From the NCBI RefSeq assembly GCF_006345805.1, contig NC_042998.1:45818001-45882000 (forward strand): DNA of 64,000 nt, written 5' to 3'. This stretch comes from Octopus sinensis. Lineage: Eukaryota. Every line of letters begins with the position of its first letter. The stretch's first letter is position 1. The notes below the pieces were generated by a model that made no database searches, was not told where the DNA came from, and worked only from the letters and a program-made list of their open reading frames with translations. The translations under genes and the position numbers were made by a program. Positions 40,401 to 43,400 of the stretch are shown here, in pieces.

Positions 40401-43400
40401 TCTGTATTCCAGCTTCAACTCAGCCAGGTAGTATTTGCACGTCACGTCCTGTATTGAAGACTTATTTCACAATATCCTAGAAAGTCATCGTTCTTAGTGA
40501 CTTTAATACTTATGTTTTCTCCACTCCTTCCATGCCCACGCTACTATAATGATGATGTGACCCCCTTCGGTCAGACACTGACCATGGGCTTGCACCTAGA
40601 GAGTTACCCTCTGAGGCACAAATCTGGGTAAGGTTGTTTTTATGGAAGACCAGCAGTCCCCCAAACCGGATATTTTACAATTCCGAACGCTCTGCAACTG
40701 TTAATATCATAACCTACTGATATTTCTGATCGATATATATTCCACTCGAACACTTTTGATCTTCAAACTTAGCCTTTATCAAGCTAACGTCGTCACTGCA
40801 CCTATCAAATCGTTTACCCAACGAATTCCGCCCACACCGAGCCTTAGAGCTTTTCAAGCAAGCTAACTGGTTAATTTCTCAGTAAATACGAATATCTAAT
40901 ATAGAACAGAGATTATGTGTTGCTGCTATTTTCTTCTTTTATTAATCAGCATTGTTAAATCTACAGTACGATCATGCTTATTGAAAATTTATGGCCGGAA
41001 ATTCTGAGAAACTATTTTATTCTGTTACTAATCCCTGTTGCTGAAGGCTGTATTTCTGTAGAGATGTTCTGTGGAGATATTCATAACGTTACAAGCTTGA
41101 GATATTACTATTCGCAGACAACCTGCCTATTTTAGGCTTTTGATCACGTGAGAAATGAAGTGCAGTTATATCTGTTAAAGCAACATTCATCAATAACTCT
41201 ATATTTCCACTACTTTCAGTGGTGAATTGTAACTTCCTATACACATATTTATAAAACGGTTTTCAGGATCTTTGATAGGATACAAAATCTCCACTTTTCA
41301 ATCAAAAGATTTGTTTTGTAGCAACCAAGGATGCTACGACTCTTTTAGAAAAGGGCAAGTATCTCAAACCAAATTTTTTGTCTTCTACAATATATCTGTC
41401 ATGTAACTAGATATATTTCCCTTTCTTTTATTGCAGAATTTCTCTCATCCGTTTTTCCAAAATAGACCTCAACTTATTTGGAATCTGGAGAAACTACCTA
41501 CACTGACTAAATACTTAGAGTTCATCGAAATTGAAAACGATCGAATGTTAGTCGAAGAGGTCATTGAAACTTTCAAAAAGGAAGTTCTTCCAAATATCTC
41601 AAAATATCAGAAAGGTAACTTCCAATTTGAAACTCTAATAATACCAAAAACTGACTCCCTAAAATGCCTCCATAATGAGAAATTTGATTTCGACTTAGTA
41701 AAATATTAGGATATTTTCCCAAATCATAATAGAAATACCTTCTTGTGGATGCCTTCCTTGTTCTCAGTAAAGAATATGAGAGATGCGAGTCGACTGCATA
41801 CGGAAGCATGGCAAAGATTAGTTGAATGTTTGTATGTTGGAGTAAGAACGTTAGAGGCAATGGAAGTAGTTTTTTCGGGTATCACTGGATACAGAGAATG
41901 TTTTAGACAAAAATCGAATTCCACTAGAAGAAGAAGAATGGAAGCAGTGTGTTATAAAAGACAGTAGCTCCTTGCCTGAAAAATGTAACTAAGAACTAAG
42001 AATAGAGTGAAAAGTGATAGGCGTCTGGTTCAGGAAATGCAGAAGAGTATTCAATGTTCTTTCAAAAGAGCAACTAAGTCCTGACAGATGAGCACGGTAA
42101 TGCATTCTCTTTTGATGGAAATAACCTGGCTGGTCTTCAATACCGAAGGCGAGATGAGACAAGCCAAATTAGTGCACCACTTCTGGTCATTAGTTCATAC
42201 TTCAAAATAGACACAGCACAATATAAGGATGAAAGCAAGAAGACTCAGTGATTCGTTATCACCTTTGTGGCGCAATACAACCACCATCAACTATATCTCC
42301 GAGCATGGCTGAAAAATTCAACTCGTTTTTCAGGACCTGAAGCCGACTGAACCGAACGTCTCTGCAAGATGGTTAGGTTCCTCAATTGGTTCTTGGAGTC
42401 CTTCTCTATCACAGAATGCCATGTATATTTATATTTAATTTCTCTGTTTTAATATTCTATACCATGTGTACTTACGTTTAATTTTGACCTTGATTTTGTT
42501 GTACTCCAAAGTACCCAGATACTTGTAGCCATCCACCTCAACATCCTTAATTCTCTCGCCGTAGAACAGCCATATTAATGAGGCGAGAAGCATTACTTCC
42601 CATAATAGTTACTACTTTCATCTCTTATAGAGATTTTGTAACTAGCTACATTACTTGTTGCAAGATAAGTGACTGATCGTCACTTCATTTTCTATATATT
42701 GTGACCTTGAGCAAATTCTTGCTGTCTCTAGCGGCCGAGTGTTCACCACTGACGAAAGGCACAAATAGTCCGAAACCTTTCGGTCTGGTGATCCCGTCGT
42801 ATGCTAGAAGATGGTGGGGGTTCTCTCCGCTGCTTGCAATATATACTAGCCGGAGGAAGCATCGATAACCAGCTGGAGGAGGCTCTTCCTGGGGTGAAAC
42901 ACGGTAGTAACGCCGAACAGCATATTGATGTGGGGATAAACATTCTTGTGTTGTGTGTGTGTTGTGTGTGTGTGTTGTGTGTGTGTGTGTGTGTGTGTGT
43001 GTTGTGTGTGTGTGTGTGTGTGTATGTGCGTGCGCGCGTGCGTGGAATTGTGCGTGACTCAACGATTTAATCCCAGCATTGGTCTGTATTTCATTTCAAT
43101 TGGATAATTTTTACATTTATAACGTTGCAGGTCATGTCCATGGTGACTACAGTCATATAAATATAATAGTAAGAAAGAAACATGAGGAAGTCGAGTCACT
43201 GCATTGCAGCGAAAAACTTTGTTCGGCGAACATTAATGGTACGGCTGGAAAAATACCTTCGTCGCCGTATAGCGTGTCTGGTATTATCGATTATGGTCAC
43301 GCAAGATACTCGTACTTAGTTCATGACGTTGCAATTTCTATTGCTTACATCTCACTCGAGAGCAAAATTATTGATTCATTAGATGTTGGTGGTCACATGC

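Follow-up and report, generated by a model that had tools for sequence, protein, structure and literature searches.

The last intron of an APH/HYKK-like gene of Octopus sinensis contains a motif that resembles a type I hammerhead ribozyme. The locus raises the question of whether this motif is a working ribozyme, the remnant of one, or a coincidence. An earlier note proposed an active intronic ribozyme that could modulate the splicing or output of HYKK or release a small RNA. The question was addressed in a 64,000-nt stretch of genomic DNA (hereafter, the window). The gene and the surroundings of the motif comprise the following features:

41615-43130, plus strand: last intron of the APH/HYKK-like gene (GT at 41615-16, AG at 43129-30), with the reading frame running unbroken through the junction
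43131-43648, plus strand: last coding exon, with the HGD...D kinase motifs and the stop codon at 43646-48, located 345 nt 3' of the hammerhead-like motif
42447-42581, minus strand: LINE ORF2 fragment (YKYLG region), matching LINE ORF2 proteins and TARA contig L001 by tblastn, tblastx, and HMM, directly upstream of the repeat segment
42603-42764, plus strand: old repeat segment comprising the left flank and the 5' half of the motif; its paralog lies at 33668-33822 (minus strand)
42946-43045, unstranded: (TG)n-rich microsatellite, beginning approximately 155 nt downstream of the motif

The preceding exon ends at 41614, followed by GT, and the last exon starts at 43131, preceded by AG; therefore, the motif lies within the last intron on the sense strand, the position typical of HH9/HH10, and is necessarily transcribed. 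The site proposed earlier, 345 nt upstream of the exon, was thus confirmed from the splice-site positions. The spliced product matched Pfam APH (E = 2e-7, 31.5 bits). A human HYKK sequence, used as a lead only, aligned to four exons (last exon, E = 2e-20). Searches for relatives or orthologues in the available collections yielded none. A tRNA search returned none.

The motif (42743-42791, plus strand) is composed of the following elements:

42743-42748, plus strand: 5' strand of stem I, UCACCA, forming six Watson-Crick pairs with 42786-42791
42749-42755, plus strand: core box CUGACGA (C3-A9), an exact match to CUGANGA
42756-42771, plus strand: helix II region, AAGGCACAAAUAGUCC
42772-42775, plus strand: GAAA (G12-A15.1)
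42775-42777 and 42782-42784, plus strand: stem III, ACC/GGU, 3 bp, with loop UUUC
42785, plus strand: C17 of the GUC triplet, the predicted cleavage site
42786-42791, plus strand: 3' strand of stem I, UGGUGA, pairing with 42743-42748
42732-42799, plus strand: possible extended stem I, CGGC (42732-35) with GUCG (42796-99), including one G-U pair, separated from stem I by a 7 x 4 nt internal loop

All parts of a type I core are present (CUGACGA, GAAA at 42772-75, U at 42784, and C at 42785), and 11 core nucleotides are retained. Helix I is formed by the flanks, has an open end, consists of six Watson-Crick pairs, and could be extended distally. Helix III (ACC/GGU) is closed by A15.1-U16.1. The anatomy given in the earlier note, namely a 6-bp stem I, the core, the GUC triplet, a 3-bp stem III with a UUUC loop, and distal CGGC/GUCG pairing, was confirmed base for base. 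The segment spanning 15.2-16.2 and loop 3, which allows dimeric action when palindromic, is ACCUUUCGGU and has no self-complementarity.

Helix II of type I hammerheads is stable, abuts A9 and G12, and usually consists of at least 4 bp beginning with G10.1-C11.1. No such helix is formed here. Two unpaired A residues lie directly 3' of A9 and are followed by G58-C71 and G59-C70 (last two digits of the positions); two further pairs, A61-U69 and C62-G68, are possible only when C60 is bulged. Hence, the helix has two contiguous pairs or four with a bulge. The minimum free energy (MFE) of the 16-nt spacer is -0.5 kcal/mol, which was equalled or beaten by 18% of random 16-mers from the window. The weak stem II described earlier (GG/CC, a bulge, and two extra A) is evident in the sequence and agrees with this energy.

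No Rfam family matched the motif locus at gathering thresholds. The best family over the locus was the HH9 hammerhead, with 16.9 bits against a gathering threshold of 52, i.e., 35 bits below membership, and with E = 0.33 on only 701 nt. When scaled to the whole window and all families, the E value of this match is approximately 30, and the match is not in the top 150. The HH9 model aligns end to end (42729-42808), the extended stem I included; in this alignment, two of the four helix II pairs are non-canonical and 'aa' is inserted. Apart from this weak match, no Rfam family spans the locus.

The RNA is also predicted to adopt a different fold:

42753-42782, plus strand: competing hairpin, CGAAAGG (42753-59) with CCUUUCG (42776-82), which cannot form together with the catalytic core and stem III

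The hairpin ties up G8, A9, and stem III. Its predicted MFE is -15.3 kcal/mol compared with -8.0 kcal/mol for the best hammerhead fold, a difference of 7.3 kcal/mol in secondary-structure energies that leave out tertiary contacts. Pairs of the alternative helix have predicted probabilities of 0.68-0.997 and those of stem III of approximately 0, with about 99% of the ensemble in the hairpin, so that the three-way junction is not predicted to be accessible.

The frequency of such motifs by chance was estimated using our own descriptor, which required the core, a stem I of at least 6 bp, and a stem III of at least 3 bp, with the spacer unrestricted. The expectation was 0.0027 matches per window from 1500 dinucleotide shuffles and 0.0056 as the mean over 539 permuted 'decoy' cores in the real window. 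At 0.003-0.006 per 64 kb, the motif is unlikely to occur by chance within one window. Extrapolated to a genome of gigabase size, this rate corresponds to a number of chance matches of the order of 100, and some are therefore expected when many windows are scanned. A generalized descriptor found three perfect-core motifs in the window against a decoy mean of 0.052, a number reached by one of the 539 decoy cores. Given the first motif, the probability of at least two extra matches is approximately 1e-3. The additional motifs and the unit containing one of them are as follows:

20901-20950: second perfect-core motif, passing a strict descriptor that none of the 539 decoys passed
20523-21219: partial tandem carrying the 20901-20950 motif
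5698-5739, minus strand: third perfect-core motif, whose helix III has 2 bp and lies within the palindrome CUAG

The 20901-20950 motif sits in a 477-bp unit that is present 1.46 times inside (TA)n. In its arrangement, this partial tandem looks like a retrozyme or a Penelope-like element. Retrozymes and Penelope-like elements are described as having tandem units of 150-450 bp with low GC content (PMC7229834) and as forming partial tandems that prefer microsatellite targets (PMC8557442); the arrangement of the unit agrees with these descriptions. Animal type I hammerheads typically have a 2-bp helix III in a palindrome, as in the third motif (PMC4209133).

Both additional motifs lie in unrelated sequence, and helix II is random-like in all three. 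The 477-bp unit was considered as a relative of the 42743-42791 locus and rejected, as it has no homology to it. Flank homology between the 5698-5739 motif and the locus is marginal (left, p ~0.015; right, not significant). Stem I of these two motifs differs at three pairs; the differences were not counted as covariation because the descriptor demands pairing and homology between the motifs is not established. Allowing one core mismatch revealed no more relics within the window. A covariance model derived from all three motifs gave no convincing further copies, the best hit being 18 bits with E = 0.05 at 13832-13877.

The repeat segment that includes the 5' half of the motif has one clear paralog within the window:

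33668-33822, minus strand: paralog of the repeat segment, with a broken core (UUGA--A replacing CUGACGA)

The local alignment of the two copies has 61% identity. The flank-only alignment score of 22.5 was exceeded by none of 1530 real-window segments, and the paralog was detected by nhmmer (E = 0.015) and by an A+C profile (E = 2e-4). Two other segments, 22672-22802 and 34050-34133, were considered as 3' fragments of the repeat and rejected, since their similarity is confined to the right-hand part of the 33.6-kb locus, which is unrelated. No tandem repeat of the motif locus was found in the intron or the window, and no Penelope-like coding remnant (pLTR, RT, or GIY-YIG) was found beside the motif. 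The locus thus has neither of the settings of Penelope-like and retrozyme hammerheads, a tandem repeat or a pLTR flanking an RT/GIY-YIG ORF. The only nearby coding remnant is the LINE ORF2 fragment on the opposite strand. A by-eye likeness of CUGACGA to the antisense of the LINE reverse-transcriptase 'FRQG' motif was rejected because LINE homology, as delimited by tblastn, tblastx, and two HMMs from ten ORF2 proteins, is limited to 42447-42581 (minus strand). A Pfam search of the three minus-strand frames found nothing.

Two sequence patterns were enriched in the window. GAYGAAAGGYA occurred 25 times against 3.4 expected, and GAAACC-N(3-6)-GGUC three times against 0.21 expected. The former was rejected as a sign of a hammerhead-bearing repeat, as 16 of the 17 exact copies lie in an abundant SINE of approximately 270 nt, ending ...cagctcgccgcctt, which contains no hammerhead and is unrelated to the motif flanks. 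The latter was likewise rejected as support; the other two matches are copies of a repeated 'attggtttcaaa' element read on the opposite strand.

The motif was compared with known systems. With the Penelope-like-element hammerheads ('min-HHR'; Cervera and de la Pena, 2014, PMC4209133) it shares type I topology, a complete core, unpaired nucleotides between A9 and helix II (position 10.1), and a possible G10.1-C11.1 pair; helix II bulges are reported in some min-HHR variants. Most genomic min-HHR copies are also solitary, truncated, and microsatellite-adjacent, with low activity in vitro (PMC4209133). The motif differs from min-HHR in having two unpaired A rather than one, 2-4 rather than 6-8 helix II pairs, a helix I of 6 rather than 4-5 bp, a non-palindromic helix III of 3 bp, and no adjoining pLTR, RT, or GIY-YIG remnant. 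The non-LTR retrozymes carry canonical type I hammerheads in short tandem repeats (Cervera and de la Pena, 2020, PMC7229834). Common to them and the motif are a helix I of 6 bp, a short helix III, and flanks that are AT-rich over a few hundred bases, whereas the motif has no tandem array, no canonical 4-bp helix II, and no recognisable loop 1-loop 2 contacts. The 20901-20950 motif fits this class much better.

The amniote intronic hammerheads HH9 and HH10 (RF02275 and RF02277), conserved in introns of RECK, CTCL, and DTNB (PMC6155905), have in common with the motif the sense-strand intron, a stem I that extends through an internal loop into a distal helix, a helix III of the form GAAACC...GGUC, and a loop 2 rich in A. 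In contrast to them, the motif reaches 16.9 of the 52 bits required, has a broken helix II, and resides in an invertebrate. The Schistosoma Sm-alpha SINE hammerhead (Ferbeyre et al., 1998), in the account cited in PMC6155905, is likewise of type I and is carried on a short, non-autonomous, genome-dispersed retroposon. According to that account its helix II is regular and it is active, whereas a single paralog was found for the present motif, and it lacks the core.

Taken together, the best explanation, with a probability of roughly 60%, is that the motif is a solitary retroelement relic of hammerhead type, probably inactive. The complete core with helices I and III, its rarity by chance, HH9 as the best Rfam family, the two other perfect-core motifs, the paralog within the window, and the irregularities shared with Penelope-like-element hammerheads favour this reading. 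Most animal type I hammerheads are carried by Penelope-like elements or non-LTR retrozymes, and these would be the likely source class. An old retroelement-derived repeat would have brought a solitary hammerhead-type element into the HYKK-like intron. The ribozyme of the source element would serve to cleave multimeric element transcripts, the cut falling 3' of the GUC triplet. The intronic copy would have kept the core, the 6-bp helix I, and the short helix III, with helix II degenerate and the hairpin favoured. Given the degenerate helix II and the preferred 13-bp imperfect hairpin, very poor or no cleavage would be expected, and the motif would leave with the spliced intron, the gene being unaffected. 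We thus infer a retroelement origin and, from the predicted folds, a lack of cleavage activity. With a defect in one of its three helices and a different fold predicted for the RNA, the motif is most likely the remnant of a mobile-element ribozyme, dead or very weak, and not a regulator of HYKK. Several observations count against the relic. A random-like helix II in all three motifs is exactly what would be seen in chance matches chosen for their core and helices I and III, and the ancestral repeat may never have had a hammerhead, since the 33.7-kb paralog lacks the core. The motif has no tandem partner and no adjoining Penelope-like coding remnant, and its helix III is non-palindromic. Its homology to the third motif's flanks is marginal, and no extra relics appear at one core mismatch.

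The main alternative weighed against the relic is a chance look-alike, i.e., an imperfect inverted repeat with its arms at 42743-59 and 42776-91 and with CUGA, GAAA, and GUC falling in its loops, without hammerhead ancestry or activity. Such a coincidence would explain why helix II is no better than random, why the Rfam score falls so far below threshold (E ~30 for the whole window and all families), why a plain hairpin dominates the predicted folds, and why the paralog has no core; about 100 such motifs per gigabase genome are anticipated, and both enriched patterns were traced to repeats, not hammerheads. It is nevertheless rather unlikely. Only 0.003-0.006 matches are expected within the window, the two further perfect-core motifs in unrelated sequence have a probability of ~1e-3 given the first, the 20901-20950 motif has independent mobile-element features, and the locus has an exactly canonical 6-bp stem I within an extended HH9-like architecture. 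A further alternative is that the hairpin is the real feature, for instance as an intronic small-RNA precursor or protein-binding stem-loop, with incidental hammerhead boxes. Its 49 nt are more stable than shuffles (z = -2.6; 1 of 200 as good), and the 80-nt extended fold reaches -24.6 kcal/mol. The 81-nt fold is, however, ordinary (z = -1.4; 20 of 200 shuffles equally stable), a stem of only 6 + 7 bp, interrupted by a 4 x 3 internal loop and capped by 16 unpaired nt, does not resemble a microRNA precursor, and the locus is covered by no Rfam family except the weak HH9 match; we regard this alternative as very improbable.

It is equally improbable that the motif is a domesticated ribozyme, whose co-transcriptional self-cleavage after 42785 tunes HYKK splicing or output or frees an RNA. 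The sense-strand intronic position, with transcription assured, the complete core with its favourable GUC triplet, and an overall architecture nearest to HH9 accord with domestication, and co-opted retroelement hammerheads are documented in amniote introns (PMC6155905). Against it stand the degenerate helix II with two extra A after A9, a hammerhead fold 7.3 kcal/mol worse with a stem III probability near 0, the 35-bit deficit to the HH9 threshold, and flanking sequence that behaves as an old repeat. In addition, non-LTR retrozymes are reported to be depleted from Xenopus introns (bioRxiv 10.64898/2026.07.22.740005), which suggests selection against active sense-strand copies in introns. A still more remote variant holds that the motif is a working but atypical hammerhead, with the two unpaired A after A9, the bulged 4-bp helix II, and the hairpin as an on/off switch, and that a cephalopod-like lineage took it over from a retroelement to cut HYKK pre-mRNA in the last intron. 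An active motif would be an invertebrate example of a ribozyme within a host pre-mRNA and would offer a natural experiment on how far helix II can be disrupted before a hammerhead fails; a co-opted one would be the invertebrate counterpart of the amniote intronic hammerheads.

For the hammerhead reading proposed earlier, the anatomy and gene context hold and an origin as a hammerhead is favoured over coincidence, whereas a regulatory function in HYKK splicing or output, or in small-RNA release, is unsupported because of the Rfam shortfall, the random-like helix II, the ~99% alternative hairpin, and the loss of the core in the paralog. A complete core with helices I and III is insufficient to call an active ribozyme. 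The motif mainly illustrates the scattered hammerhead-type motifs of retroelement-rich animal genomes. The 20523-21219 partial tandem is a better entry to a search for retrozyme or Penelope-like families in the Octopus sinensis genome.

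The hammerhead-like motif at 42743-42791 (+) lies in an intron of an HYKK-like (APH/hydroxylysine-kinase-like) gene. The exons on either side of it are as follows.

41437-41614 (+), exon upstream of the motif, with GT directly after it
43131 to the stop codon at 43646-43648 (+), last exon, downstream of the motif, with AG at 43129-43130 before it

Their junction keeps the reading frame (...SKYQK/GHVHGD...); therefore, the motif is in sense orientation within the last intron (41615-43130) and lies 345 nt before the last exon, as an earlier note had placed it. The conceptual spliced protein passes Pfam APH (E = 2e-7; 31.5 bits vs. 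a cut-off of 23.2). The HYKK-like gene had no entry in the protein collections searched. What we take to be the human HYKK sequence, used as a lead rather than a database result, is colinear with 34259-34471, 40132-40272, 41431-41658, and 43139-43636, and its alignment to the last exon has E = 2e-20.

The motif reads UCACCA CUGACGA AAGGCACAAAUAGUCC GAAA CC UUUC GG U C UGGUGA and contains the following parts.

42743-42791 (+), outer strands, stem I of 6 bp, all Watson-Crick (UCACCA/UGGUGA)
(+), core boxes CUGANGA (as CUGACGA) and GAAA, both present
(+), stem III of 3 bp with the closing pair A15.1-U16.1 and the loop UUUC
42785 (+), C17 of the cleavage triplet GUC
42732-42735 / 42796-42799 (+), CGGC/GUCG, candidate distal helix

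Every element of stem I, core, triplet, stem III, and distal pairing described in the earlier note was thus found in the sequence. The weakness that it ascribed to stem II is equally real. The A9-to-G12 spacer is 16 nt long and starts with two A directly after A9; helix II consists of G58-C71 and G59-C70, and is extended only with one base bulged. The spacer folds at -0.5 kcal/mol, a value equalled or bettered by 18% of random 16-mers of the window. The helix II spacers of two further hammerhead-like motifs, at 20901-20950 (+) (second motif) and 5698-5739 (-) (third motif), are likewise unstructured.

At gathering thresholds, Rfam gave no match in the whole window. With 701 nt searched in E-value mode, Hammerhead HH9 was the top family at the intronic locus, aligned end-to-end including the extended stem I, with 16.9 bits vs. 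a gathering score of 52 (E = 0.33); the model inserts 'aa' and flags two helix II pairs as non-canonical. This match was absent from the Rfam top 150 over the whole window, where spurious microRNA matches caused by microsatellites dominate. Folded as a hammerhead, the RNA reaches at best -8.0 kcal/mol, vs. -15.3 kcal/mol for the minimum free energy fold, a hairpin in which CGAAAGG (42753-42759; N7, G8, A9, and the first part of helix II) is paired to CCUUUCG (42776-42782; stem III). Predicted pair probabilities are 0.68-0.997 for this competing helix and approximately 0 for stem III. Since the 3' arm of the hairpin lies merely 16 nt past its partner, co-transcriptional folding should favour the hairpin too.

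Rarity was assessed with our own descriptor (core boxes, A15.1-U16.1, and H17; a stem I no shorter than 6 bp, with G-U pairs permitted; a stem III no shorter than 3 bp; a spacer of 4-40 nt). Chance matches amount to 0.0027 per window in 1500 dinucleotide-preserving shuffles, and 539 decoy cores of the same letters permuted gave a mean of 0.0056 on the real window. A chance occurrence of the intronic motif within a single window is improbable; at these rates, a gigabase genome would contain roughly a hundred matches by chance. The descriptor's other match in the window is the second motif, and loosening stem III to at least 1 bp adds the third. The loosened descriptor thus gives three matches vs. 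a decoy mean of 0.052, and only 1 of the 539 decoy cores reached at least three. The surrounding sequences of the three motifs are unrelated to each other.

The second motif (AGGCCUG CUGAUGA UAC-GUAAGUAA-GUA GAAA UCA-CUG-UGAU A CAGGUCU) has a 7-bp stem I, CUGAUGA, helix II UAC/GUA, helix III AUCA/UGAU, and A17. It passes a strict descriptor requiring at least 3 contiguous helix II pairs (decoys, 0/539; shuffles, 0.0007 per window). As a ribozyme candidate it surpasses the intronic motif, although it has no Rfam match at E <= 10. Its host unit of approximately 477 bp occurs in 1.46 copies (20523-21219) with (TA)n on both sides; 20541-20723 and 21017-21203 are 98-100% identical. This arrangement fits the tandem units of 150-450 bp and low GC described for animal non-LTR retrozymes (PMC7229834), and the partial tandem in a microsatellite setting resembles Penelope-like elements, which form partial tandems, prefer microsatellite targets, and have retrozymes as non-autonomous derivatives (PMC8557442; bioRxiv 10.64898/2026.07.22.740005). 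The region 20523-21219 has the appearance of either a non-LTR retrozyme or a Penelope-like element of the non-autonomous kind. A 31-codon ATG ORF (20826-20921, +) ends exactly at GTAAGT within helix II of the second motif, probably by coincidence; it could be an exon-intron boundary.

The third motif (UCCAGA CUGAUGA CAGGCAAGACUCA GAAA-C-UA-G-U C UCUGGA) has a perfect core, a 6-bp stem I, an unstructured helix II, and a 2-bp helix III inside the palindrome CUAG, the typical form in type I hammerheads of animals (PMC4209133). Approximately 200 nt downstream on its (-) strand there is an (AAAG)n run.

The left flank of the intronic motif is repeat-like. Directly upstream of the repeat stretch lies one LINE piece.

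42447-42581 (-), LINE ORF2 fragment of 135 nt, on the strand opposite to the motif

It has 71.5% DNA identity to a TARA metagenome contig and also matches full-length LINE ORF2 proteins retrieved alongside that contig. Because tblastn and two profile searches confine LINE homology to 42447-42581, the idea that the hammerhead boxes are antisense of the LINE RT 'RQGD' motif was dropped. The stretch 42603-42764 (left flank and 5' half of the motif) has a paralog at 33668-33822 (-) with 61% identity, whose flank-only score beats 1530 of 1530 real-window control segments; the core of this paralog is broken, with UUGA--A in place of the box. No close repeat of the intronic locus was found inside the intron or across the window. 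Compared with the third motif, the left flank is marginal (p ~0.015) and the right not significant; three stem I differences were therefore not counted as covariation.

Given the second and third motifs, hammerhead motifs borne by retroelements are likely to exist in this genome, which raises the prior for the same origin of the intronic one. We read the intronic motif as a solitary hammerhead-type retroelement relic, for which little or no activity and no consequence for HYKK are predicted (probability about 0.6). The retroelement origin is weakened by three random-looking helix II regions and by the absence of a halo of decayed copies when one core mismatch is allowed. Searching with a covariance model of all three motifs convincingly recovered only those same three. 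A pure chance look-alike on an imperfect hairpin is a serious rival, if a somewhat unlikely one. The active ribozyme acting on HYKK that the earlier note proposed, domesticated in the intron, is unlikely: helix II is degenerate, the alternative fold is predicted to dominate, the flanks are repeat-like, and retrozymes are reported to be depleted from introns (bioRxiv 10.64898/2026.07.22.740005).

Enrichments of GAYGAAAGGYA (25 matches vs. 3.4 expected) and GAAACC-N-GGUC (3 vs. 0.21) in the window were rejected as hammerhead signal; they stem from a SINE family of high copy number and from repeats related to it. This SINE-like repeat of approximately 270 nt (core ...cgaccccgaaaggatgaaaggcaaagtcgacctcggcggaatttgaactcagaacg..., 3' end ...cagctcgccgcctt) has at least 16 window copies, including the following.

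8070-8290 (+), example copy
39550-39790 (-), example copy
38010-38250 (-), example copy
29300-29930 (-), three tandem partial copies spaced 184 nt apart

It shares an 11-mer with the core region of the intronic motif, probably by coincidence.

Other mobile-element traces in the window are listed below.

1255-2384 (-), 17893-19085 (-), 24595-24816 (+), 33388-33531 (-), 47205-47548 (-); 11947-12717 (+); 48256-48552 (-), LINE ORF2 remnants and transposase-like pieces

One ORF2 remnant keeps a C-terminal region of approximately 250 aa intact (1255-1998). Inspection by eye also pointed to a transposase ORF of pogo/Tigger-like type and to a fragment of a mariner-like transposase. An inverted repeat of 98 nt (6377-6474/6713-6809; 95% identical, arms approximately 240 nt apart) may represent a foldback element or one of MITE-like type. 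Microsatellites, such as (TA)n, (TG)n, and (TACA)n-like runs, are extremely dense window-wide; when Rfam is run in E-value mode, they produce false hits to microRNA families by the dozen, among them mir-297, mir-3149, and mir-1277, none of which reaches its gathering score. A 1.29-kb segment is tandemly duplicated (54918-56205 and 56395-57681; 98.8% identical, period approximately 1477 bp), and each duplicate holds an internal array of approximately 52-bp units (55660-55911/57136-57387).
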